From assembly GCA_977030845.1 (NCBI GenBank), contig OZ365115.1:34658001-34722000 (forward strand): a DNA stretch of 64,000 nt, given 5' to 3'. The position numbers and the translations under genes were made by a program. Shown piece after piece: positions 13,956 to 55,255 of the stretch; within the stretch, counting starts at the first letter, position 1, and every line of letters starts with the position of its first letter. This DNA is from Fimbriosthenelais zetlandica (lineage: Eukaryota). The notes beneath the pieces were generated by a model. That model did no database searches and was not told the origin of the DNA. It was given only the letters and a program-made list of their open reading frames with translations.

Positions 13956-14567
13956 GTAACCTCTTATAAGTTCTAAGTAGATACTGTATAAACTATAGAG
14001 TAATTGTAGTGAAACAGTGATGTGATGTGGAGCAGGTGGTGGGGTGCATGTTTGTCTGTAGGTGGAGCTGTTTAAGCATTGATTAGCTCCGAGCATGTCT
14101 GAGCACTCGCTACATGGGTGATCACTTTCACTAATTATCGCTCACCTTCACTCCTCCTATTCTCAGACCAAAGTCTATTGTTTTATGACTGGTCCAGAGC
14201 CGATCAACCCAAGGCTCTATAAGAGAACATAAATTTATATTTGACTTTCAAAAAGAACCCCTCCCCTCGCCTTCAGAACCCAGAACATGGACATTTTATA
14301 TTCAGATATTGTTGAATGGCATTAATGGCAAGCTTAGGCATCTGAATAATCAGTACCTTTGGCCCAGGACGGGTTCTCATATTTAAAGGAGAGATTTTAA
14401 CTTTCTAAAGGATTAGCTTCTTTGTCAATATACATGAACTTCTGTGGAGGTCAATCTCTTGTCCGCTCCCTCACAAGTCTTGTACATAGTTATGCAATTT
14501 CTTTTTTTTTTCCAAATGTATTTCCTTCCTTTTCCCGATTCAAAGATCTATACGAATATCTAGTCAT

Positions 14568-14663
14568 TGGTCTTTACATGCTTTTCACCAGAGAGAGTGG
14601 GAGACATCACTGATCTTTTACATGCCTCTAAGCACAGAAAGTTGGAGACATGGCTGGCCTTTG
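14568..14663 (-). mobile_element. SINE-like family A fragment (~2 degenerate 44-bp units)
   Basis: TTTACATGCCTCT...GGAGACATGGCTGGCCTTT. Confidence 0.6.
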
Positions 14664-15386
14664 CTGTGCTAGTAGCAGCCAATAATACAATTTGTAGTCA
14701 GGCTCAAGCAAGTCTATTAGTACATGTTTCAGCCTGTACAACATATTGTCATTTTTGAGGGTCAATCGAGACAATACATGTCTACATATGGCCAGGCCTC
14801 GGCCAGCAATGTAAAGAAGGTTACATAACAATCTTAAAGCTCTTATTAGTCGCACCCATAACCCTCTGTCACATACAAGTGTACCTGAATCATATAAAAC
14901 CCGTCTATTATTCACATGTATTCTTCAAAGGTCACGACTCCTGCTTTTGTTTGATTTGTGGCTAGTTTCAGCTGGGATTTTTATTTGTTCAGAATTCATG
15001 AATAACAGTGTGTCCTGAGGGGTACTTGTAGACCCCAAGCCTGGGTTAATTGCCTACAATTTGGATCTTGAATATTGTATTTTATATATACTCTGAACTA
15101 TACCCATTAAATTTACCAAACCGATGCAAACCGCAAGAATGTGAAGAATATAGCCCTTCTCTCTGCCCTCCATCCCCCACGCCCCTTAATCTAAACATTA
15201 AGACAAATTAATTCCATGAATTAAAACTAATTAAGGCCCCTCTCAAGACACACCCTCCATCCTTCTACCAGCCTAATCCATCAGACGCATGGGTATACTT
15301 AGTATTTAATTGGATGTCGGAATGACCGAGCTTATATGCGTATGTACTTCATCAAATAATAGCAAAATCTCTCTAGTCACATATGT

Positions 15387-15458
15387 GTCTTTGGTTTGAC
15401 TTGGTCAAGGTTCGAACCGGCGAACTTCCACACACGGGACAGAAACTCAAACCATTAC
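15387..15458 (-). mobile_element. tRNA-derived SINE head fragment (family different from A)
   Basis: The minus strand reads ..GGAAGTTCGCCGGTTCGAACCTTGACCAAGTCAAACCAAAGAC: a B-box GGTTCGAACC followed by GTCAAACCAAAGAC, a junction I recall from marine-invertebrate SINEs. Confidence 0.4.
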
Positions 15459-18400
15459 ATGGTGGTTGGAAAATGATTTAACAATGAAATATAGTTTGAT
15501 ATTGTTGACAAGGAACGCGTTGTCACTCTCTCTGTAACACAAGATGGACTCGTGTTGCCAACATTTCCCTCATAAACTTCATATTTGTATCAACTTCCAG
15601 TTGTTTTTTAAAGCCATTATTTTAAATAAACATACTTGGCCATGACTGGGCGCCACCACCCGGGTTTTATTAGAACTGAATAGAGAGCCCCCTAGCGAGA
15701 GCGATGAGAGATATTTTTGTATTTTCCGGGAACGCTTCTATTGTCTCTATTGTCCGCTAGGATCGCTGTGTAATTGGAAACAGAAAATGACATTTACTCA
15801 GGCCTGTCATTCAGTTATAGTCTGACTATAGATATCAAGTATTAAATCATTACCACATGTTTCATACACATTGATCCGTGTAGCCATATCCTACTGTCAA
15901 TCTCTCACTTTTACCATTAATTTTTGAGAGGCATTCATGATAGGTTTTAGTGGTGGATCCAGCATTTTTGAAGTGATGGTGGCCCAACAAATTACTATTT
16001 GAGAGAACATACAAATCGTCTGTGAAAGGGAGGGTGGATTTTCTTTTCTCGCATAAAAGAACAGAGGCGGATTTAAGCAGTGGGTGTATTTCAAAATCTA
16101 AGCGTCTTTTGAAGGTAACAAACAATGCAGAGAGTTCCAAATATTATCATGGGAATAAAATAAAGACAAGTTTGGTCAATAATCTGACAGCACAATTTGT
16201 CTGTTCACGTCCCTGAACCACTTAGTATGACATGACAAACTGTACAGACACTCAATAACAGAACGTCTCCATGGTAACGAGTATATAAAATAAAAATACT
16301 CTTTATATTTGTCCTTATCTTTTCATGAGTCACATCCATAAGTCTTCATGACACGAACAATCTCTCTTATCTTCTCCAAGAGTTTTTTTGTGTATTTGTC
16401 TTTTTATTTATTATTTTTTGTTTGTGATGTTGTTCAGCTGCAATGACAAGTTCTTCTTATTATCGATCATTAGTTACCTTCACCGCCGTTAGGGGTCTCT
16501 CAGGTAAAAGTTGTTCTTCCGGTAGATTCTCTTTTTCACTGAAGAGCTCCCTTCTCTTTCTTATCATTGCATGAAATACAGTATATAATTGCATCTTGTA
16601 GGCCTATGGGAATATGACATACGAAAAAGTATATTTGAAATAATTAGCCTATAGGCTCTCTTGGATCTTTTTGAATTTGCACCTGCTCACTCTCCATAAC
16701 TGAGGCCTCTTCTTTGTACTATACCATTATAGGCCTAGTTGTTTATAGTCCCTTTACCTTTATAAGAACATATTGCACACAATTATAGACTCATCATGAC
16801 AGGTTTGTCGCCTTGTCGTTGAGACAGCAGCGATATGGATTTTCTTCCCACCTCTCCACCCCCGTCATCCCCCTCTAACCCTCACACCACCCTCCCTCAC
16901 CACCTCAGTATGTTCCTCCCTCAGTGAGGACCACGATAAGCTCGCCCCCCCCCCCGCCTCCCCCCGCCCCCCTCACATCTAGTGAGGACCATGATAAGGC
17001 CCTCATCTATGACAGGTGTAAGCAGCAGGACGCTGGTATAAAGTGTGGTTCCATGTAAAGAGACGCCGCTAGCAGGTACAGAAACATAGACCCTGATTAA
17101 TACCATATATACACACTATTCACTATATTACCCCCTCCCTGGATACTTTATACACCCGCCCCCCCCCCCCCCCCCTCATCTGACTATGTACCCCTCCCAT
17201 CTGCCAATTGCTTCTATTCCCAATTTAACATGGTCAGGGATACATCTATATAGCCTAGACGTTACAAATCTTGCTGTCAATTGCCTGTATTCCCAACAAG
17301 GTCAAGGAATAATGATATATCATATAGGTTCCTAAATTAGTTTGAGACTTTGTCAGGCAAAATGATTTATCTAAAGATGTTTGTTCGGAAATAGTACAGA
17401 GTCCAAAACCATGAGAAATTGTCAGAACATAGAAGCACACCGGCTCATGATTCACTGACATGAAGCAGCGAGTATAGGATGCGTTCTCCACTCGATGTAT
17501 AGAATTCTACACTCGTATAGATATGGTAAAGTCGCGGCAGGACCCGCATTAAGTGGGTCCAGCCTGATTAGTGCATCTTTTCCGCATTATTGACCGCACT
17601 TTTTACTATCAATCACGGCGCCCCATCCTCTCCAGGGTGTCCACCCTGTCTCCTGCTCCTGACCTTGAAAGTGACCTTGAAATTGACCCTGGGATGTCTT
17701 TGTCGCGCCTGGCGTTCCTAGGAGTGCTACCAATTTGCAGAAGACATCCTAACTACCCGAAGCCAGCTGTAGACGCGAGAAATATTGACTCTTAATGTGA
17801 CCTCTGACCCTTACCTTGACCTTCTCCTCTCATTAAGGACAACCTTGACCTTTGCCAGTGACCTTGGGTTGAAGATTTTGACCTTGATAGTAGGATCGCT
17901 TTGCGAAGGGCAGGAGAAGCTATCAAAGGATAGGAGGGAGATGGGGAGTGAAGAGGGAGGTGGGAGGTGTGAAAGGGTGGGAGCTGGGGGAGTGGGGGAA
18001 CAGACAGTTGAGCCTGTCAGAACACCTGTATCATTATTATGATAAATGCACTATCTGATCGCTTCAAAATAACCTTTTATATTCACAACTTTCGTATTGA
18101 AATCCAAAGATTGGACCAAATGTGACCCGAGAATGCTTTGATCTTAACATCTGTATTTCAAATATCAACTAATGACCATAGAATCTCAGAAATGATTCAG
18201 TCCAGAAATTTCTTCTTTTGTTTTGTCCATTTGGTTAGCTTTAAGCTCATGGAAGATATTCAAGTAGCCGCCAAACGAGGAAAGATATTGCTTTGCCTTG
18301 CTCAGGGGCGGATCCTAGATTTTAATAGGAGTCTAAATATACATTTTAGAACAGTTACTGGAAAGTATGATGTTTCTGTGTGAACAATCAAGTTTAGAAA

Positions 18401-19254
18401 TCCATAAAGCACAATCTTTTAGAAGAGTTGAAGACTCTCTTGGTGGTAGAATGTACTCGTCCACGATTCGCCATACCTGAATGATAAACTTTAAGTGGTT
18501 CCATGAGTATAAACCGTCCCCGGGGGCAGCAAGCAGTCACCCATCTCACTATATGATAACCCTTGCTCCTCTCCTCATCCCTGCCTGGCTGACTAGATGA
18601 TTGGGGAGTGACAGCTAGAGATGGAAGAGCTAAATACAGACCAGGGGTGTCTATAGGCCACCGTCACTGGCAGCAATTCGCAATCAGCGAGCAGGAACGC
18701 TTGACAGTTGATTTTACTTCTGATTTACTCCCCCTGTCATCGCAATTAAATTGATTTAAGATTTGATTTATGGCACTTTTGCTTTTCTCGTGATTTCCCT
18801 ACATTTGTGACTTTGTAATTAATGACTATTAGGATATAAAGTGGAGGAGTATTTTAAATAAATGCTTGCTCAACCAACTGTACCATGTACTTAGTGCATT
18901 TACTATAGTTAAAGTTGGAGATAAAACAGGTTGGTTTTTTGTAAACAAAACATGAAATGCTTTCTCTGTAATTGTTTCTCATAAACAGAAGTCATTAATC
19001 AAAGGAAAGGTTCAACTCTGAAGTTTGTATACTCCAGGGAAAATGTCATTTCTGTTATCAGACTTGTCATGGATGTTTTAGATGTCATGAAATCACATTT
19101 GATTGACTGATCCAGGTATTCTTTTTGATGAGCTCATAAGTTGATTTCTAAAGTTCTCATGTGATTTTGTATCTTTGTAAGAACATGGCTCTGTTGTCTT
19201 TTATGCAACACATATTTCTCAGATAGATTTGTGCTCTAAAGAAGTAACCCTCTG

Positions 19255-19415
19255 AAAGAGCTGGTGCTCTATTAAACTTCATAAATGAGCTGGTGCTCTA
19301 ACTCTCTAAATGAGCTGGTGCTCTCACTGAACTTAGAGTAAATTTTACTCTAAGCAATGAATGAGTTGGTGTCTGAACTCACTGAATAAGCTGGAGCTCT
19401 AATAAAAAGAGCTAA
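19255..19415 (-). repeat. Second GAGCTGGTGCTCTAA tandem cluster (same family as 13799-13955)
   Basis: About 5 degenerate copies of AATGAGCTGGTGCTCTA. Confidence 0.55.
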
Positions 19416-22400
19416 CACGCCTGATGCTCCTATCTATTTCTAATATGTATAGATTTGTACTGTGGATCGGTTTAGTGTAGACGGGACTTTAGTTCAGTGA
19501 ATCACAGCTGGTGTGAAGGAACCCCTCCTGGGTTAAGCCTGGAGCAGGGATGAGTCCCCGGATGGTACTGTCTGACAGCGATGGGGGCGTGTATGACAAC
19601 TACTGTCATTGTAATTGACAGATTTGTCTTTGATTAGATTAGTGCTAAGTACAAGCATATCTACGCGGGGAGGCATGCTGGAGTGGTGAGGGGTTGGGGG
19701 TGGGTTGGGGGTAGGGGGATGGGGGGTTGGGGATGGGGCGGGTGGGTTGGGGGTAGCGGATGTTCAGGGATAGGGCGTCGGGGAGAGGAGGAGGGCTACG
19801 GGGGCCACAGGCGAGGAAACGCTTTCATATTTACATTAGAGATTGAATGAATTTTATTCATATTTATACTAGAAAATGTATGAATGTAAACTTTGATAGG
19901 GAAGCCTATGGTAGGGTTTGGGTGGGGTAGATGGGCGAGGGAAGGGGGGTATACATACAGGGGCTTTAGGGGAAGAGGAAGGGCGTTCATCTTGTAATAT
20001 CTTAAATCATTTATAAGTTTAATCTGAAACAATTGACTATTGAGTGAACCCCTACTGAGAATTGTCATCCTCCCATAGCAGGCTGACTTCTACTCGTTTA
20101 TAGAAACTCAATTATCAACTTAGTCTGTGGGAATGTCCGTTGCCGTTTTTCTCTCATGTTCTTTCCATCTTATCTTTTTCCTGCCCTTCCTTCCCACTCT
20201 TTGCCTCTTTTCAACTTGTAATGATCTGATGTTTTTCAGAAATTGGAATAAAAACCTACCCTTAGTATAGACTACCGCTAATGCTAAGATATATATTTTT
20301 TTAAGGGAAATAAAAACACTAATCCGGTACTTTGGCTCCCTGATATTGCCCTTACTCGTTCTTCTGCTCTTTGCTTTCTTCATTCATTCTTTTGATTGTT
20401 TGCATTATCTTCTTATCAAACCCCCAACTCCCGGTCTCATTAGGCATACCAGTTAACCTTACAAGTTAACCACTTCCCAAAGCCCGGCCTGGTTCATGTG
20501 AAAACGCCGCATGAAGTGCCCGGATGACACCCACAGGATGTCAGAGCATGCTGGGAATTTGTTAGAACTGTCTCTCTGCATTATCCCGCGCGGTGGCGCC
20601 ACACGTAAACAACCCACCCTATTATCGCTCACTCTCTCTGACAATTCTCACAAACCGAGAATTTGTCAAAACAGGGGGGCGAAAATTGGTGAAATGAGCA
20701 CATGATGCTGGTCTTATTATACCCTTCAGACAGATGTGAGAAGAAAAACACTGACTGTGTACTTTATGAAACAAAAAAACATGAACCTTCATAAGTCATT
20801 AAGTTAGCCTTTTATCGTTTTGACCTTGTGAAGATGATCTTTTTCTATGATCTCTGGTTCTAGACGTAGTCGTTTAAAAGAGGGAATGAATGCGTCTAGC
20901 TGCACCTATTTTTCCTATAAAATTCATTTCGGAAGATGATTATATTTTTAGTGTACTGGCAATAGATATATCTAAGTATCATTGTTTTTTTAAGTACTGT
21001 AAATTTTGCTTCAAATTGGAGTATACGTTAAGCAAATAGAAAAAAACATGTCCGTATGAAAAGCGGGATTTAAAACAGTTAGATAAATAATGACTTTCCT
21101 TCTCAAGATGGACAAACTTTATTTTTTCTTCACACAATTTCAAATGCTCCTCACATGATGGGACATTGAATCAATTTGTCATTATTACAGATTTCAGTTC
21201 TTATTTAAAGCTTAAATGATATCTTACTTTGTTTTTGTGCTGCTATGGGGACCATCCCAAGTGCCAAAGAAAAATAAAGTGTCCCCAAGCTCGTACCCAT
21301 CTGTGATTGACAGGGGACAGCTGCGCGACTAACACTTCCCCTACACACGTATACCGCAGCGTTTTCTTTAATTGAGATTGATTTGTAACTGTCTTCTTCA
21401 TTATTTTCGTCTATAGATGAGGGCAGGGCTCCGGACGTGTCAGAACATCTAGATGATACATACGGTATGTTCTCCATTAATTCTCTAATTTAATTTTGGT
21501 CTCAAATGTTAAGTATGCTCCCTTTATATTTCACACCATCCAAAGAGCACAAGAAGAGAATGAAATGTTAAGTACTCTATGCAGTGACAAAATGTTGGTT
21601 TGGAAAATCAGAGAAGAAATGTCCTAGATGCTATATTTGTCTTTAGAAAAGATTGGCGACGGATTGGAGAATCAGATTAGTGTGTTCTAGGCTTTATGTT
21701 GGGCTACATTAGCTGATGGCCCTTCTCACACTCTCAGCGTGGCTGGCGTCTAAATTGAGTCAATTTAAGACTTGATATGTGTGAAGTGAGGACGAGTGAC
21801 ATGTATTGGTTCTGGCATCTTTAACAATATCTAATGATACATTTGGTTTAGCACTTTAAACTGAGGGGTCTGTTTCCGGACGACAGGGCAGATTCCCAGC
21901 CTTTATTAGAATGTTTAAGACACGTATTTATACTTTAACGATTTTCTTTAAAATATCACCCCAAAATAGATTTTCTTAGGGTCAGTCACTGTGTATCGAA
22001 GCTGAAGATCTGCCTCTTTACTTATATTGTCTTCATTAGAATGCCCACTTTAACTATTTACTTTAAGATCTGCAAAAGAATATTGAAAATAGATTTATAA
22101 GTATTTTGGTAGGGTTGGGGCAGAGGCGGAGGAATTAAGTTGTTTGGAGGTGCGGCAGTCTGATCCCCTATAAGCCCCCTGCTCCCTGGATCCACCGTAT
22201 GGTATACCCCCCCCCCCAACCCCCAGCCTCCTGGACTAGATCTGTACCCGTCTGGTTTTCTTTATAACGTCTAACTTGATCCCGTCTAATTCACGCCGAC
22301 ACTTTTCCGCGCCTCCCTGACAGGAGAGTGTCAGTCCAAAGGTGAGCATGCGCATCTCAGGCTTCCCGGTCGTTGATCCGGATTGAGGAAGGACTGGGGG

Positions 22401-25980: not shown

Positions 25981-28900
25981 ACCACCTTTCTTACCTATCT
26001 GTTTGTCTTCACTTCATATTCATTCTCCTCAACCCAGTCTATGAAATTGTCAAGCGAGGGAAAATATTTACTTTTTAACAATCCAAAATGAAAACTTGTC
26101 AATGAAGAGTGTCTGTTCCCACTCAGTCCTAAGCCGCAGTCCTTGAGAGCAATAGAGGAGAGAGGGAAGTGAAAGGTGACATTTTAAACGATGCTCAATT
26201 AGTGACACCTAACAAGCCCACCTGTAACATTACATAATACAATCAACTACACCTGATAAACAAATTCCAACTTTTCTCACCTGTGTCACCTGTACAATAG
26301 ACTAGCGGAAGCATCGCGGCTATGATGAGGTATGAGTAGTCTACGCCTCGGGTCTTCTTGGAGGCAATTCACCTTATCTAAGTGGTCTCGTCTGTATAAG
26401 AGGCTTATAATATGTTAACCCACTGTGAGATTTGAGTCAGGGTTGTTGTAGGGTATCTTGTACCACTCTACTAGAATTCACTGGCATTTGATTGTTTGTC
26501 ATATTTGTAAGCAGTCCATCCAGAAGCTACTTGTTGCTTTTGGGTTTAAAATCTAACTTTAAAAGAGCAATTATGACATCATTTTCAATGAGGGATGGAG
26601 AGGGAAGGTTAGGTGAATGAAGTGTGACACTTGTCGGCCTGAGGGAGTGCCCCCAAGGATCACTCCTAAGAACTAGAAGCGAACTAGGGACAGTTAGAAC
26701 GGTTTAAGACCATTTTTATTCAGACTTCATAGAACATATATGGGTATCATTTGTATCGAAAGTAAGACTTTTTGAATTTATTGCTTTTGTCAGATTCCAA
26801 GGTCTTCAGTGTGCAGTACTGTATACTATAGGCATCTCCTTAGGTGTCAATTTTTGTTATGTGTGCTCTTCCCCCACCCGCTCGCCTGTTTACTGTAGTG
26901 GATTTACTGTAAGTATGGGAGGGTAAGGAGTGAGGGTTGGGGTAATTATGTAATCAGACATAGCTCAGGTGTGTGGAGTAGGCAGATTCCCAGGTAAGGG
27001 GGAGGATTAAGGACAGGTGTGTCAGGTGTGAAGGTGTCTTATGTACATTGTCAGTGTATGATACCTTTCTCAACTCAGTTTAATCACTCAGTATGAATAA
27101 TTTAATGCCTGAACCAAATTGTCTCTATTGCATGAAATAAGTGGTACACCGACTAATAGCAATTGATATGTGGTTCTAAATACGGACGTGGTAGCTGACT
27201 TTTTTATTTTATCAAGATTTCGCTATACATTTACCAGCAATTATATTCCAGCAATTCTCATTAATATATTAGGTATATTGTTAAGCCTAACCTCGTAAGC
27301 TATACAAATCTATTCTGGGATAAAACAAATTGTATCTTCCCAATATAGGCCTAGTTGCTATGAAAGATAAGTGAATTATTCACAAAACCTGCACTGATTT
27401 AAGGAGGCGAGCTATTGGAAAATAACTGTTCGCAATAAGGCGCAGTAACAAGCAGTGAGAATAATTACGTTCCTATTTCCATGGCCGCGGTCAGACCGCA
27501 TGTTTTCAGGACAAACCGTCGCCTGATAAACTGCTGCGTCATTCTATCTGCTTTAGTTAGGATTCCTCCCACCAGGGGTCGAGATGATTCCCTTTGATTG
27601 TCGCTAACAGCGCCTCTCAAAATGCGTCCTCAAGCCTCACAAATGACGCCATTTGATGCCCCCTGCTCCCGCCACTCAATGCGCATGCGCATTTCATTTA
27701 TTCCATTAGCCTCGCTCTCGTCGCGTCCAGGGGGAGACAGCGAAAGCGAATCTGCTCCCATTATCGCTCACCTTTCCTTGATGGACTTCCCCTAGCGGAC
27801 AATTACTGCAAATTTGTTTTTGATTTGTGCTCTCTGCCGGTTTTTCAAGGTCAGAGTCCTTCTAGTGGCTTCACCACAGATGAGCCAATGGGAGATGATG
27901 TTACCAAAGTGGTGTGTGCGCATGCGCATGTATTGGAAGCCACCAATGGCTGGTGATGATGTTACTGAAAGGCGGTTGCTGTGGCAACAAGACAAAGGAG
28001 CAATCACGGCTTGTCTAAACCGCATCGTGTGATGATCAGGCCGCGCGGGAGCCAAGTGTCAGACCTAATGACAACAGCTCATTCTCTCTCCCCGCTTTAA
28101 ACTGTCAAAAGGTCCCCTGACATCAAAGATTAGCCTCCAGATCTCTATCCACTGCAACTGGATTAGATGAAAATCCTGTGATAACATTTGTAAAATTCCT
28201 TTAAAATGTGAGACATCTTGGAGAGTAGGCAATTAGATAAAAATTCTTTAATTGTTCAGAGACAGACTCAGTTCCTTCTTAAAGGGTGGGGGCTTTAAAT
28301 TTGAGACATTTTGGAAGTATACAACTAAGAAAATCCCCTAAAAGGTAAGGAACGGAGCCAGGTTGTAAAAGCGGTTTCCAAATTCTTCAAGAAATATCTT
28401 GATTTGATTCGAGTATTGTACTCAATTGATGACAAGTTCCTTGCCTCAGATAACATCTATTTGATGTTGAGTCTGTTGTCGGACTGATGTGCTCCCTTTA
28501 CTACCTTATAGATTGATGGTTGAACCGGGCTGTATCTTTTTATAAGCTTTTAGAGCTGAAGTCTCTTCCCGATGAAGAGACTTGTAATGGATGTAGTCTG
28601 CCATAGAGAGGTTACCATGGCTCCCGTCCATCATACATACAGACAAAACCTCCCGCCCTCCCGCTACCAGGCCATCCTGCCCACGGCAAGAAATATCCCC
28701 CAAATTGATTCTCATAAAAATGGAGGAAGAAAAAGCGATGACGGCTGGAGGTAAAATTGGGAGCAGATGGACGGAACGGACCCTGGACCAAGTCTGCTGC
28801 CGCGTTGCATGATGGGATGGTCGCCCGAGGCTTGTGATTGGTTAATCCTTTCACGTGAAATAACCGCCCATTCCAAGTCCGAGATAGACTCCCTTTATCC

Positions 28901-29721: not shown

Positions 29722-29722
<1 letters not shown>

Positions 29723-31020
29723 TGTCTGTAGTGGACTGTTGATCATATTTCTGCAGGAGCCACCATTTTCACCATGTTGTGGACACTTCTCTCTGATCTG
29801 CTCCCTTTTCAACCTTACAAACCCTTTCCATCTCTTCCCCTCGGCGTCTCCCCCTCTCCTCCCGATCTCTATCATGACAGTTCAATTTAGCCTGGGTTCA
29901 TCCTACCGAATTAAATCACTCATGTTGAAATACACACAAAACCTCTTCTCGTGTCGAGTCCTTTGCCCCTTGATTTGCACTACAAATGGCTTTAACTCGC
30001 CGCGTGCGTACAATGATTGGAGATCGCGCGTAGATGAATGCTGCGCGCGCATCTTCGCCGCCCTCTCAAAAGACGCCGATTGAGACATCCCCCGCTTGAC
30101 TGCTCATTGGTTGTTATGGCAACAATTGGTATTGTGATAAGTAGGCTGTAATCGCGTGCTCATCTTCCAACCCTTAACCCTTTCTTGTTGATTTTTTCTG
30201 CCATAAAAAGAGATACACTCGATTAAATTACAGCTTAAATACAGACAATTTTCAGCGGGTTTCTTTCGAAATGAGGAACAGTTTCTTAAAAAGTTGGCAC
30301 TGGAATTATGGATGTTTTAAAATGAAAAAAAATAGATCTAGATACGAATTAATTGGTCAGGGGTGAAGGGGTTAATATAAGATGGCGTGATAATCTTCAC
30401 AGCGCCCTCTGGATTACACTCGACATGAGCGCCACCTACCGTGCTCTACCTGTAATAGACAAACTCCCTATTATCGCTCAGTCTTTGATGTCAGCTTTGA
30501 TGTTGTAAATCACTCCACATCTCCCCCATTATCGCCCATTGTCTCCTATTATCGCTCACCCATGTAAATGAGATGCTCTAGTGGTGTTTACTAAGTTTAT
30601 TCAAGCTTAACTCGGGTCTGTACTCCTTCTAGATGGTTTAACATATTAGTATTCCCGAAATTAAACGTGGCTTCTGAAGTTCTGTTCACTTAGTGCATCC
30701 TAAATTCAACATGCGAATTGTTGTGTACATCAGTGGAAGTGAAACATGATTCTAAACTCTTTTGAGCTGAAACTTCTTCTTTGAATTGGAAAGCTGTTGT
30801 TCCATAAATAGTATTTTGAACTTACCTCAAAATGGACAATGGTATGAACCATTTCAATCTTAACAGCTGAACAGGCCCCTAGTATTACAATCTAATTATA
30901 CCTCATCTAAATGCGGGACATATTGGGATGACGTAAAAGATGACGTAATGAGTGACGTCAGGGTCAGACGTCGCACGTCCCATAAGTCACGTGTCCACCA
31001 GGGACTAATCCTTGAGATCT

Positions 31021-31036
31021 CCACTAGGTGGCAGTG
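31021..31036 (+). promoter_or_regulatory. CTCF-like site
   Basis: CCACTAGGTGGCAG matches the CCACYAGRKGGCR core. Confidence 0.5.
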
Positions 31037-35545: not shown

Positions 35546-35663
35546 CTTACATGCCTCTCACCACATGACTGGCCTTTACATGCCTCTCAACAACAGACAG
35601 TTGGAAACATGACTGACCTTTTACAATACTCTCAACAACAGAGAGTGGGAGACATGGCTGACC
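35546..35663 (-). mobile_element. SINE-like family A fragment (~3 units)
   Basis: TTACATGCCTCTCACCAC...CAGACAGT...GGGAGACATGGCTG. Confidence 0.65.
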
Positions 35664-38156
35664 CAAGTCCATTGAGTCAAAAACTCTAATAAAACGATTG
35701 CGTTAATGAATAAGTAGAGTTTTAGATAGTGAGATAGAGTTGGTTGTAGAGTCGTTAGAAGGTGAGGTATAATATTAATGATACAGTTTATCAGTCGGGC
35801 GTCCTTTATACAGGCCAGGTGAGACCAGGTGTGAATGATAACGGTGATAACAGTAGTAAATATTACACCCACCACCTCCTCGTCCCCCACCCACTCCCCC
35901 ACCCCCTACACTCACACACGTGCCACTCCTGTGATCAGGCTACTGTATAATAATACCCTGTACATTTAAGCCGCTACTCCAGTGCTGACAGTTAACCCTC
36001 AGCACTATTGTGGCAATGTTGGTGGTTTTATCATAATGAAAATCGCAAAGAATCTGTGGCAAATGAAATCGCACCAGTATGGACTTATGAACCCAAACAA
36101 ATACAAAAGTTACAGTTGCTTCCCTATGTTTTTACCCGTTACAATGGTGAAAATACTCCAAATAACAAATCTAAGGTGGGTATGGTGCGTTCCAAATTCT
36201 CTAAATTATACATGAACCCAATTGGTTTCTGCTGAAGTGCTTTAGATTCCCCGCACGTCTGCCCTGTCAGGAGGGCAGGGAGGATGTAGTGAGAGAGAGG
36301 GTTCTCTTCCTACCTCTCCTCATCTGTTTACAGGTCAATCAAGGTCAAATTTTTTCTGATGTTGCCTCGATTTGGTCCTCATTATCTCCAGAACGAGGCT
36401 GGAATTTTAAAACGGCTTCCTACATTGTTTCAGTGACTGCTGAAGCCTGAATGGTTAGACCTTTGCTTCCAGGCATGATTATACTTTTCACTGAAGTTTA
36501 AAATGGATTAGAAAAGCCAAGCTAAAACACATGTTGGGTCATCATCACATTCAAAGAATGAAGTTTATATTTTATGACATTTTGGTGGGGAAAAATACCT
36601 GAACTTTTGTATTTTAAGTCTTCCGGGTTATGAGCTCTGAATGTCAGTTAGGTTTTGAGTCTTGAGAGAGTTGACACGGTCCCCTAGAGTTTTTTTTTCT
36701 TGTTCCTCCCTTTTTTATTTTTTGTGCCCCTCCTCCTTTTGTATAGAATCATAAGGAGATGAACGATTTTCCTCAGTGAGTAGAGAAATCGGGAAGAAGA
36801 AGAAAGGAGCAAAGCAGCTGAGTCAATAGAAAATGTAAACAGAGGACCAATATTGGTTGGCAAGGAGACGGCGGCCATGATGATAAAAGAGGCAAACTGC
36901 GCGACTAGAACAAAGTCTACTTTCACTATCTCTGTCCTAAATAATCCATGCCATGGTCGTGAAGGCAGTTTAACAGATGCTTTCTAGTTAATCTCAGATG
37001 TTTGTGGTCTTTGATTTTCTTGGTTTTTTCCCTAAAACGCCGTAATGTGAAAGGCCAGTTAGGACTACCTTAGCTAGGATCTTAGTTGTCCATTTTAATA
37101 GTGGGTTCACCTCTTGTAAGCTAGTTACCTCATGAAGAGTTCTGGAGTCATTATATTTTAATATTTGCTCTATCTCTCTGAACCTTACCGACATAGATGA
37201 ACACACAATAACAACAAAGTAGGTGTTACAGCGTGAACCAGGGTACCAGCACACACAGCCTGGGTACCAGTTAACAAATCCCATCCTTCATACCCCTATT
37301 ATCGCTCACTAAGACACCTAGCGACCGCCTAGACATCCACACCTAAACTTGATCCAACATAGCAGTCTTTGTCCATCTATTGTCCACGGACAACTGGACG
37401 TTTCCCAGACTGACAGCTTTGCCCTCAGCTGCTGTATTGATTTAAGTGTCCACTTGTGTCAAACACGATGATTGAGCCATGGTCAGTGTCAATGATAGCC
37501 GTACGGGGGTTAGTTGGTATGTCAATATGTGGTCTAAATGGTCAGACAATAGACAGTTACTCCCCACGGACGGTATGACAACCACAATGACGTCATAAAA
37601 GGATTGTCATAGCAACACCGCCTGAACTGAGCATCCTGTCACCTCTCTGTTCTTTCTTGATTTATTTCATTTCACTGTATTTTTCAATACAGAAACCATT
37701 CTAACTGTTTCCCTTGACTCCCTGTTGATTTATCAACAATATTTAATTGCCAAATGTTGCCTCGGCTTGTACCGAGCATTGACTCTATCTTTCTCAGAAT
37801 CCACTGAACTCTGGCATCTCTTTCACTGAATGATGTCTGAGACCAGCCACAAAACCCTTCTCCACATCCTCTATGGCCTTTTACGCGCCACTCACGGCCG
37901 TCTCACTCTCACATTTGTTCGCATTTTCACCCAATGATGGCGAGATTTCCTCGTCACTGCGGGACTACCGGAAGTGCTTGGGCAGTCGCTAGTTTTGCCC
38001 CTCCCAAGCTGGAGATTTCCCCTTCCTGCGCGCACCAGTTTCCGCATGTCACTCTATGTCAGTTCATCACTGCACCCGCCCTGAGTTTCCTTACACTAAC
38101 GGCGAGTTTGTGGCTCCGCCGGCCATTTTTCTTTTCTGGGCGTTTTTAAGAATTGT

Positions 38157-38560: not shown

Positions 38561-39961
38561 GATCAGATGATCAGTTGAAGTTTAGAATTAGAGGGGAGCA
38601 GGGACTATCTTCTGGAGGCGAGCCAGGATGGGCCACGATAGACGATCTCTCACGATCTCTCACGTCTGATCCAGTATTTATCTGAGCGATAATAGAAGCA
38701 TCAGTAGGCGGTTAATAAGAGGGCGAGCAAAGTGGTCGTAAATATGTCGTCCTGGGTTCTTATTAGGCATCTAAAGATGAGCTAGGATGAGCTGATGGTC
38801 CTACTCACTATCTACAAACACTCCCGATGACAAGGACCGCTAGTAATCTATCATAGGCTTACTGGAGATGGCTCAATAATGGTCTGTTTACTTTGGGCCT
38901 TTCTCTCGATACTCAAAGGATAAAAAGGATATTTAAAACTCATTTTAGTCGGGTTTTTCTTGGGAAAATGGAAAGGATGATTGCATCTTTAAAGCCATTG
39001 AGCTTTCAATTAGAAAGGTCGAGATTTTGAAGTGCATTTGCCAGACTGTCAGTTGGTAGGCCAGTCACAATCAGGTTCACATTGATTGCGATTCTTGCAT
39101 GCCCTTGCGATTGTGCGGATTTGGATGAAAACACTATAGATTTGAGGTATCAACGAAGCGAGCTTGCACATTGCATTTATCTGAGCTTTGTTGGTTTAAC
39201 TGGAACTCCATTAGGGATTTCAGCAAGAAAATTCCAATGACAAGTTGCACGAATCGCAATGCTAAAAAAGCGGAGTGGAGTTAGCCTATTAGCACTGACA
39301 AGTGTCAGTGTTTATTGGGGACGGTGAATAGAATGCTGACACGTCAGTCTATCTATCAGACAGAGGGCTGTAGCTAATTAATCCCACAAAAAGCCGCCAT
39401 CTTGATGAGCACCGCGTCCCTCACCCATTTACACTGACGGACGCCCAGCCTTCCCGTTGTTAAAAGAGCGGGAAAATGGAACAAAATGTCGTCTGCGACA
39501 CAACCGGAAGTGGGCTGTCTCGCGTCTATACATCAGAGCCCTCTAACGGCCACTAATGTAGACAGTAGGCCTCCTTCCCACGATCAGTTCCACAAAAAGA
39601 TAAGGCCGTCTGAAAATCAAAGGAAGAAGGGAATGGAGTGGAGGCTGAAAATGGCGACAGGAAGTGCTAAACTGACGCGCGTGCGCAGTGAAAGGATTTC
39701 TATGAGAGGAGAGAGACTGGAAGCTTGGGTCCTGATGCTGACTGCCTACACTAGCAGGAACTCACAAGCTCTCTCTATTGCATAATCAACTCTCTTTTAC
39801 ATAGTCTGTCTAGAGTTTACTTTGGAGTAAAAGACTCTTTCTAAAGACTATATATCGGGAGAAATTACTGCAAAGTTCAGTGTAGACAGAATCTATAATT
39901 GAGGAGGCACGTGTCCCCACTTTGGTTCAGAGTGCCCCCATATTGGGGCAGGTGACTCCTG

Positions 39962-42217: not shown

Positions 42218-42455
42218 GAGGTTCAATTCCCCATAATAAGCATTCTTCAGGTTTGCCATTGTCCTTCTCTATCTAGTGCTGATAACTGGGATATCAAAGG
42301 CCAGTCAGTGGTGAGAGGCATGAAATGGCCAGCCATGTCTTCCATGTCAGTTGTTAGAGGCATGTAAAAGGCCAGCCATATCTTTAATTGTCTGTGATCA
42401 GAGGCATGTAATAGGCCAGCCATGTATCCCACTGTCGAAAGGCATGTAAAAGGCC
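42218..42455 (+). mobile_element. SINE-like family A copy (B-box, body, ~3-4 units)
   Basis: GGTTCAATTCC at 42220, then AAGCATTC..TTTGCCATTGTCCTTCTC..AGTGCTGATAACTGGGATATCAAAGGCCAG and repeated GAGGCATGTAAAAGGCCAGCC. Confidence 0.72.
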
Positions 42456-43830: not shown

Positions 43831-44220
43831 CAGATATGTGTCCCGCTGTTTATGGTAAGAGGCATGTAAAAGGCCAGCCATGTCTCCTACTGTCTGTGGT
43901 GACGGGCATGTAAAAGGCCCGCCATGTCTCCTACTGTCTGTGGTGACGGGCATGTAAAAGGCCCGCCATGTCTCCTACTGTCTGTGGTGACGGGCATGTA
44001 AAAGGCCAGCCATGTTTCTTAATGGCTTTGGTGAAGGTCATGTAAAAGGCCCGCCATGTCTCTTAATGGCTTTGGTGAAGGTCATGTAAAAGGCCAGCCA
44101 TGTCTCTTAATGGCTTTGGTGAAGGTCATGTAAAAGGCCCGCCATGTCTCTCAATGGCTGTGGTAAGGGACATGTAAAAGGCCAACCATTGGTGAAGGTC
44201 ATGTAAAATTCCAGCCATGA
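43831..44220 (+). repeat. 44-bp minisatellite (~8.5 units) derived from SINE-like family A
   Basis: CATGTAA unit starts at 43863, 43907, 43951, 43995, 44039, 44083, 44127 and 44171 (period 44), followed by a truncated unit. Confidence 0.92.
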
Positions 44221-47007: not shown

Positions 47008-47075
47008 TAAGGTGCCTACACACTAATCCGATTCTCCATCCATGCAGCTCCATCTGATAGCTGTCCGATTCAATA
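47008..47075. mobile_element. Solo TIR of the 55256 MITE family just upstream of exon 2
   Basis: ACACTAATCCGATTCTCCATCC...CCATCTGATAGCTGTCC matches the MITE terminus. Confidence 0.6.
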
Positions 47076-47206
47076 TTTCAATATTTCCAATGCTTGTAAC
47101 TTGAACAGTCCGATACGCCGAGGTAAGGGTAACTAAAGTGACTTCTCTTACAGATTCAATTTGCTAATTACATTATTTTGAATATTTTTTGTTGTCTTTT
47201 GAACAG

Positions 47207-47493
47207 AGTCCGATGACCTGACATATGGGAACTCGCCGGAGGAATCCCATGACGACGATCTTGACGATGTTCATTCTAACACCGACGAAACGCCAGAACC
47301 GGAAGTTAAAGATGAACTTCCGGTTTATATACCTGATGATATCCCGATCCCTGAAGGGTTTCAGCTGCAGGAATCGGGCGTCTATAGCGGCCTGGGTGTA
47401 TGGACGCTTTGTCATATAGAGGAAGGAGAGAAATTCGGACCTTTTGGAGGAATACAGAAAGATAGTGTAGATGATCCATCGTCAGCTTGGGAG
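47207..47493 (+). CDS. MECOM/PRDM16: Coding exon 2 of Prdm3/16: acidic linker plus N-terminal part of the PR/SET domain
   Basis: Branch-like CTAAT (~47164), T-rich tract and TTGAACAG acceptor. The exon reads (E)SDDLTYGNSPEESHDDDLDDVHSNTDETPEPEVKDELPVYIPDDIPIPEGFQLQESGVYSGLGVWTLCHIEEGEKFGPFGGIQKDSVDDPSSAWE and ends in a phase-0 GAG|GTAAGT donor. It aligns by eye to MECOM YIPDDIPIPAEFELRES..GLGIWTKRKIEVGEKFGPYVG...DPSYGWE with the same exon end. 37+287=324 nt, 108 codons, no stop. Confidence 0.96.
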
Positions 47494-48909: not shown

Positions 48910-49045
48910 CTGGTGGGGTGGGGGGGGGGGGGGTGGGGGAGGAAGAGGTGGGGGGGGGGGGGGTGGGGGAGGAAGAGGTGGGGGGAGAGTTGGGCAAGCC
49001 AGGAGTGAACCTTCTAGTGGTGATGGTTTGGGGGGGGGGGGGGGG
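48910..49045 (+). repeat. G-run tandem repeat (~30-bp unit) with G-quadruplex potential
   Basis: GGTGGGGGAGGAAGAGGTGGGGG twice, plus long G runs. Confidence 0.8.
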
Positions 49046-49866
49046 GTGTTGCAGGACCATATAGACAGTTTTTTTAGAGATCGACCAGAATTGCTGCTCT
49101 TTTTCCTTCTGCCTCACTTTTAGATGTATGAGACGGTATGTTTGGTATGTGATGGGATGGGGGATGGGAAGGTTGAGATGTTTTTGGATTCGTGTATTTG
49201 GAGTCCAATTAACCCGATTTTGGAGTGGGGATTTTACCAGTATTTTTAACAGTGTATAGCAGATTGGGGGTGGGGGTAGACCTGCATTTGCTGCTTTTAT
49301 TATGTCTGAGAATATTGCAATGATAGGCACGATCTGTCACTCAGAATTCGTCAAATTATTCTCATGAATAATAAAAAGAACATAAAAAGATCTGCCTAAA
49401 TTGCTACATTGTAGGTTCTTTCTCTATCTCATGAAGATGCTATCTTAACTGTTATCGTAGTTGACTATTGTAATAGTGGAGGCCCAGTTTAACTGCTATC
49501 TTAGATATCCATCGCGGTAGTGGAACCCCAGTCTAAGCTATCACTACCATGATGGTGGATGCCCATTTTAGTCTAGGCAACTCTTTTATTGCAAGAGAGC
49601 CCCCCCCCCCCCTATCCCCGACCCGGGGGCCAGCGTCTGTGACGTCACAAATGAGCATCTGAAGGACGTTGTTGTCATGCCATGGACCTTTAAGTGGACA
49701 TGATAGTGGACAGGTCAGCCGCTGGGGGCGCCACTAATGCTCGCACCATCCTCGCCAGCCCGTGATAAATTGCGATATTATTTTAACCCATTAGTGCTCT
49801 CTCTCGATTATGGGCGCCGCCCAAATCGACATCCTTTTAGAGATAAATTGTACCAATTATGTGAGT

Positions 49867-51150
49867 TAGGGAGGCGAGGAGGGGTGGGGGATGGGAAGGA
49901 GTGGAAGGGTGGTGGTAGAAGGGGGTTGGGGAGAAGGGGAGGATCGGAGAGAAAGGGAAGGTCGGTGGTAGAAGGGGGATGGGGAAGTGGGATCGGGGAG
50001 GTGAGGAGAAGAGGGCTGGACTGGAGGGATGGTAGTTATAAAGTGCAAGATGTGTGGAGAATGGGATAGAGAGGAAGAGATACAGAGAGATAGATACAGA
50101 CAGAGAGACAAACAGGAGAAAGGGAGAGAGGGATGGGTCGGAAGAGAATGGGGATGGATGGAAGGCGGGGTGGAAGTAGGGATAGATCGGAGGTTTTGGA
50201 AGGGACGGACGGTTTGGGGAAGGAATGGGAGGGAGGGTTTGGGGAGGGAGGGAGGGAGGGAGTGATGGGAGGAGCTGCAGTCAGAATGATAACCCCCTCA
50301 GTGCATTAAGCTCGCCATCCCCGCCACACGATGAAAAAATGACTAAGTTCCGATGTCTTGTATTATCTTCGTTTTATCGCCATGGCTTGTTCTGCTAGAG
50401 TGACGGCCCACCATTTACATTCAGGGAGCGCGGGGATGAAAGCCCGCCCAGCCCGCCTGTGTGCGTGATCATATTTTGATTAGAGTATCGCTACGTCATT
50501 AATATGGCGGGTAGGAACGCTGGGTAATGACGTAATTGTCTGACATGGTGACAAGATAAAGCGACCATCGTGAAGGATCAGCCTGACTGGATGTCGCATT
50601 ATGTCATCGCGCTGATCGCGGTTATTGACGGCCTTTATAGATCGACTAATTTTATGACAAACAAAAACGCACTCAGAGGGAACAGGGGGTGGAGATAGGG
50701 AAAGGGGAAGGGGAGGGGGATAGAGGGATGGGGATGGGGAAGGGAAGGGAAGGGAAGGGGGGATAGAAGGAGGGGGTAGGGGACAGGATAAATGGATCAA
50801 CAGAAACAGCGATAGAGGGAGATAGAGGTAGGGAGAGACTATAGATGGTGAGAGGAGAAACGTAGATAGGATGGAGAGGGGATAGAGACAGGGAAGGAAA
50901 GAAGGGAGACAGGGGGAGCGAGGAGGGAGACAGACAGAAAAGAGAAGGATAGGGTGAGGCAGACAAAGAGAGCAGAACGAGAGAGGAGATACAAAAAACG
51001 AGAGAAATAGAACTAGTGATAAAAAGTAGTGGGCGATAAAGGGGGATGTGAGAATGATGGTCGGAGTTGGCCGTGTGGGGGCGCTGCATGTATGGGGGGG
51101 GGGAGGCAGGGCGGTACATCGGGGGGGAGGGGGGGGGAGGGAGGTAGAGG
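49867..51150 (+). repeat. Two long purine-rich tracts (49867-50272, 50681-51150) flanking a CpG-rich spacer
   Basis: G/A-dominated on the + strand; the spacer 50280-50670 is mixed sequence rich in CG. Confidence 0.8.
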
Positions 51151-52304
51151 GGATATTAATTAAACCTTACATCATCCATAACTTATCCTCTATCAGGGTG
51201 ATCGCTCATTTGCTCTCATATGCCAGCTCCGAAATTACATGTAATTAATTCAACAAGACGGGATGGGTGAGTGAGGGGTGGTGGCGAGTACCATCCATCA
51301 GTTAAACGCCCATCCACTCAAACTACCGTATCTTACAATAATAATCTCACAATATCTTATAATATCTTACAATAGTAACTTTTATTTTTTACAAATTCCA
51401 TGTTAACATGTATATTCAGGAAGTCATATATATATAGGTCTAATTCCCATAGTGAACGCATTTCTAATACGATGGTTCTTATGATAGTTTTTGTGTGGGT
51501 GCGTTGGGCCATGGGTGATGTAAGAAGGCCCAAAAAGAATCAGATTCCATTTGCCAAATATACAACTATTTCACTGGCCTTTGAATATGACACCCGTTGA
51601 ATATGAAGATCGACTGTCAAGCAAATCCACAATGGAATATCCTGCCAAAAGGCCATCTCACTAAAGCGACCATATCCCACTTTAGTCCATAATTAGTCCA
51701 GTCCCATGGGTGGACGCACTAGTGGGAAACTTCTGTATATAGATACATAATCGCCGTTTTTCCTCTGGTGAAAAAAACACTGCACTAACTAAAGAAAGAA
51801 ATCATTCCCAATAAAAGCTCAGATGCTAAAGGAAAAGCTTTCAATTTAATCATAAAAAAAACTTGTACTCAGTTTAAGGACTGACTTTCTATTTCTTCCA
51901 CCCCCCCCCCCCCCCCCACCCCCCACGCCCCCTTTAGTTCCTCCAGCGCTCACTAGGGGGAAGCTGAGTGCAACATCTCCGCGGAGGGAGCGGTTTGTTT
52001 AGGCATTCAGTTTTGATGAGGCGTTTGTATGTGAAGGGGGCATTCATTAAGCCGCATCACAATAGAGTCAGCCATTTTTTGTTTAATCTATCATTCCTCG
52101 CGCGCTTTTTCATCTAGCTTCCCCCGTCTCGGCCTCACATCTCGTGAGATGCTTTCAGACAGCTCTGATGGGCCATTCCATGCCGCCAAGCCTCCACCAG
52201 GCATATTAAAATTTAAAACTTTTAAAGCGTATTCTTCAGACCTGACAGCTTCTTTAGTGGTGAATTCACTGAGGCTCTTTTCAGATCTTCATGTTCCTCC
52301 CCTC

Positions 52305-52570
52305 TGCTGCTCCGCTCCATCAGACCCCCCTACACCCTCCCCCTATTCTCCCCCCTCCCCCCTCCCCCCTACCCCCACCTCAACCAATCCCCAACTCCCT
52401 CCCCAATACATCCATCCATCCCCCCACGCATCCCTTATACCACCCTTGTCCCAACATTCTCTCCCACCCCCAAACTTCCTCATCTCCCTCTCCAAACTCT
52501 CCCCATCCCCATCCCCATCCCCACCCCCCCCCCCCCAACCCCCAACCCCCCACCCCCGGCACACCCACTT
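52305..52570 (+). repeat. C-rich low-complexity tract (G4 potential on the minus strand)
   Basis: Multiple runs of 4 or more C. Confidence 0.8.
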
Positions 52571-52972
52571 CACCACATGATTGGTTTTAAATCCAATCAT
52601 CCTTCAGTGCAGTAAGCTCGTGTTAATCGGTACTGAGAACATTATTCAGCCTAATTCTCTCTCCGTCTCTGATTTGCTTTCTTTCCCACCTGTTCTAACG
52701 CACCGTGAAGATTATAAAAAGTCAAGTATTGAAGCTTTGTTGCTGATAATGCTGAGCATCCAATGATCAGGTGTTGATACAGGGGTGGGTTCATGATTTT
52801 GGAGGTGGGTGGGGGTCGAGTGTGAGCTATTTCTTATTCGGTCAGCGCTCCTTCATTATATAGACAATCTATCAATAATATTTGTTTGGGAAGGGTAGGA
52901 ATTTACCACAGTGAATCCAAGATTTTCAAACTGTGTGTCCGGGGGAGGGGGAAGCCATGTGAAAAATGGCAA

Positions 52973-53116
52973 TGGGAGACACGGCTGGACTTTTATTAGA
53001 CTCTGACCACAGACAGTGGGAGACATGACTAGTCCTTTACATGCCTCTCACCAGACAGTGCGATATATGCCTAAGGTTTGAGAGATGGACAATTGCAAAT
53101 CGAGAGAATACTTCTG
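52973..53116 (-). mobile_element. SINE-like family A fragment
   Basis: CCACAGACAGTGGGAGACATGAC..TTTACATGCCTCTCACC followed by GACAATTGCAAATCGAGAGAA, like 1786-1808. Confidence 0.65.
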
Positions 53117-55255
53117 ATAGGGGGTTAGGGTGAGAGGGTAGAGACTGATCAGGCGTTCCTCCCACCAGCCCGCCATCTACTGGTAGTTCCTCAACATGAT
53201 CATGTAACATCACATGATAACTTTACATGCTATCCCGGCATGCACCACTACCCCGGGTGATGGGAGAGCATGCTAACTGTTAGGCCAAGCACCATAAACA
53301 GTTGGTTCTTCTTAATAGGAAAACTAGTAATGATTCTTGCCAGTTTACAATATAAAGTTTGACCTTGCATGACCTTGAACTCCTCTTTACTGGATTGATA
53401 GGCTAATCAGTTCATAACATCAGTTCATAACCAAACAGCATACAGAAAATAAACCTAGCCACCCTAAAAAAACTTTATTTAAATGGATAAAGTCTTACTG
53501 CTTATAATCCAGTCCAATAACTGACATTTCAGATTTGGGACTGACTTTGTCTCGCCTTGGCCTTTGTGTTTATAAACTGCCTGCATCACGGGGTCTCTAT
53601 GGATACTTGTCTCAGCCCTCTGGTGCTGTCTAATTAAACTATACCCACCCCCTCCCCCACCCCTACCCCATCCTCCATCACAGGTGTGTTGATTACAGGT
53701 GAGTTAAATATTAACACCTGATTAGAAAACTCACCCTCATCCATCCTGCTCCGGTAAAGGTTGGATCTGGTGGGAGCAGGAGGTGGGCGATAATAGGGGG
53801 TGGACGATAATAGGGGGTCCTGGAGGTAGGTGAGTGATAATAGGGGACTTGGCTGGCATCTTGGAGTCTAAACCGTGAAATCTCTGATCTATCTATCTTA
53901 AAGAGACTCATTGTTATATTAGTTTTTGTGAAAGAACTGTTGCCAAATGGAAATATGGAAATAATATGCGCAATTTTGGTAGATTTTGGTGCTGTTTGTG
54001 GTTTTCTTTTTTGTTTTTTTTTTAAATATCGGTAGTGTGAATAGATGCGGCAACTGGTGGATCAAGACTGGGGTCCAGGGAATCATCATAACCTTCATTC
54101 ATAACAAATGGATGACATTATATTTGTGGCTATTGGAAGAGATAACGACAACTTTTACTGGAGATATTCCCTTTTATCAAAGATCCACTATATCTTCACA
54201 GTAAAAAAGAGATGGAATAAGTCATCTTGAGTGGGACCTCACAGACAGTAGAGAGGGGCTCGTGAGGTGGAGCTGATCAAACAAAGATGGCGCTGTGTAT
54301 ATTATGCTGCATCATTCCTCTCTAACCCAGGGGGTGTCCTTCGTGGAGTTCTTAAACCTTTTTTCACGTGCCATCCTTCGTGGAAACAATCACGAGTATC
54401 TGTTCATGTTTTTATCTTTTTTATCTTGCCTTAAGTGGCTGCTTTCTACCCACAATACATTGCTTCTTCCTCTGTCACGTGTCACGACAGAATCCTGATA
54501 TCTGAGACTCGATTTTTTCTCTTTTTTTGTCTCTAACTTGACTTTTAGGTCAGTAAGGATGTGTCCTTTCTTCTCCTACATATCAATCGAACTAGAGATA
54601 ATACAGTTTTATAATCCTCCATCGTTCCTCTAAGAATGTTACAATTTTTAGATCTTTGGGTATTTTTCAATTATCTCTTTTTAAAATTATTGAATAGATA
54701 ATTTTCTAACATCCATTTCTAAATTTGTTGACGTTTTGTGTTATTTTTATGCCTTTAATGTAGTTCCAGTATTTTGAATGAAAGAGCTTTTATAATAACT
54801 ATTACCACTGTTAAAGTGAACTATTTATGCAGTTAATGTCATCACAGATTCAAAAGTTTCAAAAGCTTCTTTAGTATGTAACGTATTTGCCTTCCATTCA
54901 GTTTCTTTTTGAAGAATATTTATTCTATTTTATTCAGGAGGTACACCATTTACATGTAAGACGTTGTTTTACAGACAACATCTCTTGTCTTCCCACCTCT
55001 TCCCGAAAGAATATAATATTCGTTTTCAAATTCCTTTTGAGTTAAACATTTCTACAAGCTGTTTGAAGATCTAAATTCCAGGGATGATGATAATATTCAC
55101 TTTATATGTTTTTTTCTGTCAGTGACAGTGGGAGGAGAGGGATGGAATCTGACTGTTATTCCACGTGTCCCCCCACGCTTCCACACTCACCCTATATTTA
55201 CATCTATGGCATCTTTTTCTCTCTACATTGTGTCTCGCCTTGCCCTGGTCCTGTG

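Follow-up and report, generated by a model that had tools for sequence, protein, structure and literature searches.

An 18-nucleotide (nt) word recurs 13 times in a 64-kb stretch of the genome of Fimbriosthenelais zetlandica (contig OZ365115.1, positions 34,658,001 to 34,722,000; hereafter the window) and, judged by sequence, the same motif recurs in at least two other animal genomes covered by one metagenome scan. We tentatively propose that this motif is the selected recognition site of one putative sequence-specific factor, which would act genome-wide inside transcription units. The motif had been taken for a locus-wide enhancer code, or a looping or insulator element, of the PRDM3/16 giant intron (the original prediction). 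Its reading as a site for a sequence-specific factor is still the leading one, while the locus-wide scope at PRDM3/16 finds no support, given that the motif is present in Kelch, PMT, p450 and Cys-loop channel genes elsewhere.

The exact 11-mer core of the word, ATTATCGCTCA, is present seven times in the window, six times on the + strand (starting at 14134, 20621, 27760, 30470, 30548 and 37298) and once on the − strand (38683), against an expectation of 0.03 from dinucleotide-preserving shuffles, and none of 100 shuffles reached seven. The 16-mer CCCYATTATCGCYCAC has 11 copies in the window at up to two mismatches, where 0.08 are expected. Alignment of the 13 copies extends the conserved block to this 16-mer plus one base on either side, with the consensus C-Y-C-C-Y-ATTATCGC-Y-CAC-Y. 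The resulting oriented, degenerate 18-mer, CYCCYATTATCGCYCACY, is composed of a pyrimidine pentamer, the invariant core, and a C plus pyrimidine, and it recovers 13 copies at up to three mismatches versus ∼0.6 expected in the window. On recount, the number and coordinates of the copies and of the exact 11-mers, together with the expectation for the latter, were all as originally predicted. The mismatch spectrum of the 18-mer is bimodal. Four, six, one and two copies have zero, one, two and three mismatches, respectively, and background alone is seen at four or more, with the four-mismatch class consisting mainly of CT-rich, low-complexity sequence. The 13 copies thus represent a discrete family rather than a continuum of decay. 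One four-mismatch relative (TTCTTATTATCGATCATT, at 16454-16471) is presumably better described as an Onecut/cut-type ATCGAT site. Information content steps up at position −1 and drops after +16 (n=13), and no other non-repeat word of this length is as strongly over-represented in the window, where only a 44-bp minisatellite ranks higher. The central CpG is kept in 11 of the 13 copies in a window with a CpG observed/expected ratio of 0.52, and the sub-core reads TATCGC, TATCAC or TATCGT across the copies. A literature search for the motif strings matched only primers.

The metagenome scan used a pattern based on the homotypic triplets of the window (ATTATCRYYCA twice, then ATTATC, with variable gaps), which in the window itself finds exactly the two triplets. 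It returned at least 120 contigs, most of which are tandem repeats of other kinds in which ATTATCRYYCA happens to occur. Among the matches listed, two groups of contigs exceed what the pattern demands, having either the full 18-mer or the exact GCT core at many sites. The first (group A) comprises contigs L027, L024, L059, L032 and L030 from the whole-genome shotgun (WGS) sets JAAUYA01 and JAAUXW01, which have a GC content of 0.37-0.45 and are CpG-depleted. Two of them share an unrelated repeat, indicating the same or related species, and PDB and Pfam comparisons show that group A contigs encode animal proteins, including a Cys-loop channel exon in L030. They bear the 18-mer in full, from the CCCC-Y prefix to the CAC-Y suffix, both as solitary copies and as tandem arrays with periods of 17-30 bp and locus-specific spacers, the long arrays being in L024, L059, L032 and L030. 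The array units mostly have CA in place of CG (ATTATCAC), and the alternative TG is rare. The window doublet at 30522-30559 has a counterpart doublet in L027, with 87% identity over 38 bp.

Two group A loci have further features of their own. At L027:1-2250, tandem units of ∼159 bp are made from a C2H2 zinc-finger coding fragment; in each of them, one to four motif units of 20 bp break the sequence after ...CCACATTGTAACAA, and at the end of the contig there are two intact finger-like units plus a poly(A) run. At L030:740-1010, a 30-nt tandem unit fuses the motif with a copy of the donor of the adjacent exon (ACTCA/GTGAGTA, where the slash, here and below, marks the splice junction), and one reading frame runs open through this array and would encode a repeated decapeptide. 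In the viral-collection contigs there was one match, L121:353-401, with two exact cores within 49 bp.

The second set of contigs (group B) consists of eight JAAUXT01 contigs (including L070, L112, L001 and L113) with a GC content of 0.52-0.59. These share repeats, which points to one species, and they include exons of Kelch, PMT and P450 (CYP2-like) genes, identifying an animal genome, as well as a USP-like gene. Within 65 kb they contain 72 copies of the core (at most one mismatch) with the logo YYYNY-core-N6-CGTG; no other position is conserved (n=72), and there is nothing beyond ∼26 nt. Many copies have a palindromic CACGTG at a fixed distance of 4 nt from the core. When the triplets by which the contigs were retrieved are set aside, there are 24 further sites versus 1.06 expected, or one per 2.7 kb, mainly as direct doublets 25-39 bp apart. 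Their density (∼1 per 3 kb) is of the same order as that in the window, with nine loci in 64 kb, and the simplest reading is that the window would be an ordinary sample of a genome-wide family. The group B sites are located in introns. By our own count and estimate, 8 of 34 arrays start 6-25 nt past a GT[AG]AG[TC] donor compared with ∼0.7 expected, including arrays at verified exon junctions in L113 and L112, and some lie 21-23 nt ahead of an acceptor. Sites in sense and antisense orientation number 8:2 (P=0.11). As far as these sequences go, the word recurs in unrelated genes elsewhere and the motif is therefore not specific to PRDM3/16. Its apparent presence in the contigs of other animals at similar or higher density, with unrelated flanks, comes close to the equal genome-wide density that the original prediction had named as telling against itself.

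We infer that the word is kept by selection, since its flanks are randomised, its core holds to within two mismatches and its CpG persists in a CpG-depleted region. Randomised flanks around a near-invariant core, in 13 window and 72 group B copies, call either for selection or for the copying of only about 18-26 nt, and we know of no process that copies such a short piece without its flanks. We also infer that the word would act inside transcription units genome-wide, and not as a PRDM3/16-specific code. The molecule that is read is probably DNA. This is suggested by the long asymmetric word, as a multi-finger protein would need, by the TATCG sub-core of BED-finger sites, which the motif also carries (PMC7471704), by the fixed spacing of the group B CACGTG palindrome, a feature typical of composite DNA elements, and by the presence of both orientations in the window. 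The enrichment of NRF1-type and CTCF-type words also makes the window regulatory-looking DNA. The factor would most likely be a DNA-binding protein of the multi-zinc-finger or BED-finger type, and an asymmetric footprint of 16-18 bp would suit about 5-6 fingers. Local tandem duplications of 17-35 bp would be the source of new sites and thereby of the homotypic doublets and triplets. The strand preference within genes would reflect selection against the opposite orientation, which would put a strong cryptic donor, (A)G/GTGAGC, into the transcript.

Several observations weigh against a selected DNA site. No match was found with the known factor motifs tested (DRE, hDRE, GATA and CTCF). A near-invariant stretch of 11-18 nt at about one per 3-7 kb resembles the copying of a master sequence more than a set of degenerate sites, and the CpG, which most group A array units have lost, is not indispensable. 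The intronic location, the donor-proximal arrays and the sense bias are only indirectly explained if the motif is read on DNA. P values lie between 0.07 and 0.11 for the sense bias, the orientation pattern in the window and the association of variant with strand.

Among the closest known sites are those of BED-finger proteins. The DRE (the DREF site) is an 8-bp palindrome, TATCGATA, whereas the motif is asymmetric and 18 nt long, and this octamer has no match in the window. The hDRE is the ZBED1 site, TGTCG(C/T)GA(C/T)A (PMC7471704). Such words (TGTCGYGAYA, at most one mismatch) occur 15 times in the window versus 6.7 expected, including one exact match (TGTCGTGACA, − strand, 54480-54489), and none of the 15 overlaps any of the 13 copies. 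The motif resembles the DRE, hDRE and the CGATA clusters of BEAF-32 in its TATCG/CGATA sub-core and in having a CpG, but it is intronic where DRE and hDRE are promoter-proximal. BEAF sites occur in clusters of three, resembling the two triplets of the window; BEAF-32 is not known outside Drosophila. The BED finger originated in hAT transposases, proteins that recognise short, dispersed repeats. A GATA site (WGATAR, either strand) is not present in 12 of the 13 copies, the reverse complement of which reads CGATAA, and only the 53829 copy reads TGATAA. The original prediction had found no match to GATA or DRE, and these tests bear it out.

CTCF sites are likewise long (about 15-20 bp), oriented and rich in information, are of the multi-finger type, and are dispersed with unrelated flanks, and CTCF function depends on site orientation. 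Their sequence is unrelated to the motif, however, and the density inferred for the motif (one per 3-7 kb) is far above that of CTCF. CTCF-type words (CCASYAGRKGGCRSY, at most two mismatches) occur 16 times in the window versus 5 expected (30428-30442, 53169-53183, 9194-10277 and others), with a perfect word at 31021-31035, and none coincides with a copy of the motif. A literature search on annelid chromatin loops and CTCF returned nothing specific. NRF1-type palindromes (GCGCATGCGC, at most one mismatch) are also enriched, with 12 in the window versus 0.19 expected (9850-11897, 27681, 27918, 40651, 56084 and others). Four of these are grouped within a CpG-rich patch at 9.8-11.9 kb, and the two perfect ones at 27681 and 27918 are 237 bp apart on either side of the 27755 copy of the motif; they may mark promoter-like islands. 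At CHD4, the long zinc-finger motif of ZNF410, which includes TATTAT/ATAATA, forms homotypic clusters, and the ZNF410 sites are essentially confined to that one gene. The motif described here differs in being found in many unrelated genes and has only six letters in common with the ZNF410 site. The likeness to BED-finger sites, BEAF triplets and CTCF sites, and also to the minisatellite cores considered below, is general only.

Table 1. The 13 copies of the 18-nt motif in the window, with mismatches counted against the degenerate 18-mer where given.
Position	Strand	Description
6558-6575	−	variant CCCCTTTTATCGCCCACC, one mismatch
14129-14146	+	lacks the 5' CCC, three mismatches, exact 11-mer core
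20616-20633	+	exact 16-mer
27755-27772	+	no mismatch to the degenerate 18-mer; between the perfect NRF1-type palindromes at 27681 and 27918
30465-30482	+	copy 1 of the 30.5-kb triplet; ends in CAG; CTCF-type word 24 bp upstream
30523-30540	+	copy 2 of the 30.5-kb triplet, GCCCAT variant
30543-30560	+	copy 3 of the 30.5-kb triplet, 20 bp past copy 2
37293-37310	+	exact 16-mer
38681-38698	−	three mismatches, exact 11-mer core, ends in CAG
51028-51045	−	TTTATCGCCCAC variant
53782-53799	−	in the 53.8-kb triplet, no mismatch
53799-53816	−	in the 53.8-kb triplet, CGT variant; 17-bp tandem duplicate of its neighbour
53829-53846	−	in the 53.8-kb triplet, CpG changed to CA; + strand reads aggtag/GTGAGTGATAATAGGG, a consensus splice donor

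The individual copies are listed in Table 1. Both homotypic triplets of the original prediction are present, and both are partly local tandem duplications, as seen from a 17-bp repeat that Tandem Repeats Finder (TRF) places at 53778-53818 and from the 20-bp spacing of the last two copies at 30.5 kb. These are the only tandem pairs in the window (30523/30543 and 53782/53799) and seven loci are solitary, so that there are about nine independent loci rather than 13. The surroundings of the copies are C-rich and G-poor on the copies' own strand (P∼0.02), and the association with CpG islands is weak, with three of nine loci at or adjoining an island. The window has no convincing open reading frame (ORF) and no zinc-finger exon, and ten of its ORFs were absent from the protein collection searched. 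Its most over-represented set of words belongs to the 44-bp minisatellite family, which has a unit containing GGCATGTAAAAGGCC... and occurs in both orientations at 1562-1720, 13670-13712, 14596-14650, 35547-35663, 42304-42446, 43853-44183, 53006-53042 and 58691-58803.

The motif could instead be a selfish or neutral dispersed mini-repeat with no function for the host, which we consider unlikely although it is a serious alternative to a selected site. It might take the form of a mobile-element remnant, such as a transposase-bound subterminal repeat or an introner-type sequence, or of a minisatellite core spread by the copying of small patches. The very high density of near-identical copies, their tendency to form tandem arrays of 17-35 bp at many loci and the 38-bp doublet common to the window and L027 are all consistent with such a repeat. 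Horizontal spread would suit the fact that genomes within one metagenome project have the motif despite differing widely in composition, and the TATCG sub-core would suit the hAT derivation of BED-finger sites. However, no element body is evident, as nothing past ∼26 nt is conserved in either the 72 or the 13 copies. None of the flanking columns is informative in the 13 window copies, sensitive self-BLAST of ±400 bp found no similarity between copies, and the direct repeats that adjoin the copies do not exceed those at random positions in length. Copies of a transposon, miniature inverted-repeat transposable element (MITE) or short interspersed nuclear element (SINE) were rejected because there is neither flank similarity nor target-site duplication, in agreement with the original prediction that the copies are not a transposon, and there are no terminal inverted repeats. 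A piggyBac-like end (CCCTA...) was rejected by eye, as TTAA precedes no copy, and the primer-binding site of a long terminal repeat (LTR) element was rejected because the CA needed to form ...CACCA follows no copy. A mini-repeat would also leave the randomised flanks beside an intact core to be explained, by selection or by undescribed copying of ∼18 nt.

Two known kinds of short dispersed sequence differ from the motif in other respects. Minisatellite cores of the Jeffreys or PRDM9 type are 10-16 nt long and common to short arrays of differing unit and spacer, and PRDM9 motifs turn over quickly. Most copies of the motif, in contrast, are solitary, and its core is identical across genomes of very different composition. 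The solitary copies are all in the same phase and are thus not random fragments of arrays, which again argues against a mini-repeat. Like introners and intronic splice enhancers, the sites in other genomes are intronic, mostly in the sense orientation, and near both ends of introns. Introners are alike over their whole length, and splice enhancers such as G-runs are 3-7 nt long, whereas the copies of the motif have only about 18-26 nt in common. The motif-bearing introns of L112 and L113 are unrelated beyond units of 26-35 nt, and the window copies are not introns, so an introner was rejected; a search of the introner literature yielded nothing specific.

A property of the word overlooked by the original prediction is that its reverse complement, (A)G/GTGAGCGATAATAGGGG, has the consensus of a 5' splice site with a G-run after it. 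The chance of G/GTRAGY in a random 18-mer is ∼0.5%. The five best + strand copies read AG, GA or GG before /GTGAGC on the − strand. The − strand copies are mostly weakened on the + strand (GTGGGC, GTGGAC and CTGAGC; Fisher P=0.10 for the link between variant and strand), with the exception of the copy at 53829, where the + strand reads aggtag/GTGAGT. The region around this exception (53684-53846, + strand) has a polypyrimidine tract ending in CACAG/GTGTGT, followed 15 nt later by a recursive-splice-type junction, TTACAG/GTGAGT, at 53699. The consensus donor at 53829 comes 130 nt after this junction, and an 8-bp inverted repeat, GGTGAGTT...AACTCACC, lies between the two. GTAA or GTGA words found 16-23 nt upstream of four window copies are weak, all lacking a G at +5, and were dismissed as probably due to chance.

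The motif might accordingly be an element of the pre-mRNA, carried on the sense strand of introns and read near splice sites by a protein or by base pairing, which we regard as rather doubtful. Such an element could enhance or mask splicing, as its 3' half (GCUCAC or ACUCAC) is complementary to the donor GUGAGC or GUGAGU. It would fit the group B arrays in introns of the Kelch, PMT and USP-like genes, their 8 of 34 starts 6-25 nt past GT[AG]AG[TC] with others 21-23 nt before an acceptor, and their 8:2 ratio of sense to antisense sites. In minimum-energy folds of group B, most of the motifs near a donor pair with it, at energies as low as −14 kcal/mol. The G-poor, C-rich flanks on the motif strand would fit as well, as would the predominance in arrays of the CA variant, which is a perfect complement of GUGAGU, over the rare TG variant. 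On the other hand, the invariant 11-18 nt far exceed the usual length of RNA-binding-protein motifs, we know of no small nuclear RNA (snRNA) complementary to the motif, and both orientations are found in what is presumed to be a single transcription unit in the window. The window copies lack a strong upstream donor and, when ±40 nt around each are folded, a consistent structure (mean z=−0.47). A structured RNA gene was similarly rejected, there being no Rfam match in the window or in 15 loci and no consistent fold. In group B, the base that faces donor G+1 in the pairing is not conserved, so that the donor complementarity of the motif would be a lead rather than a defining feature, and the sense bias reaches only P=0.11. 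The palindromic CACGTG partner also speaks for DNA. A broader version, which we put forward as no better than a long shot, is that the motif would be a cross-lineage, intron-marking 'anti-donor' signal of marine animals, with 11-18 nt occurring in transcribed DNA at about one copy per 3-7 kb and read by a dedicated protein or guide RNA so as to control the choice of splice donors, among them the cryptic or recursive ones of giant introns such as that of PRDM3/16.

The single orientation switch of the original prediction is weak on the nine independent loci, which read −, +++++, --- (three runs or fewer, P=0.07 by a runs test) and give P=0.036 only when the 6559 copy is dropped post hoc. Neither AT nor GC skew changes sign near 38 kb, and two convergent transcription units were consequently rejected as the cause of a switch. 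A locus-specific enhancer code, or a CTCF-like directional looping or insulator system, organising the PRDM3/16 giant intron would account for the homotypic triplets, for the + block at 14-37 kb and − block at 38.7-54 kb with 1.4 kb between the copies of a convergent pair, and for the regulatory-looking window, but it is very improbable given that other genomes have the motif in unrelated genes and at a density that is no lower, that the orientation pattern is within reach of chance and that CTCF-type words are separately present and enriched.

If the motif is a selected site, as we tentatively favour, its factor would have intragenic targets, perhaps 10^5 by extrapolation from local densities, in two or three animal genomes at least, and would be a major player in the chromatin or splicing of spiralian-type genomes. 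If it is a selfish mini-repeat, it would need flank-free copying of ∼18 nt, a mechanism so far undescribed. Both outcomes correct the attractive but unsupported notion that PRDM3/16 has a regulatory code to itself, and both indicate that a long motif found in a single window needs a genome-wide count before it is read as locus-specific.

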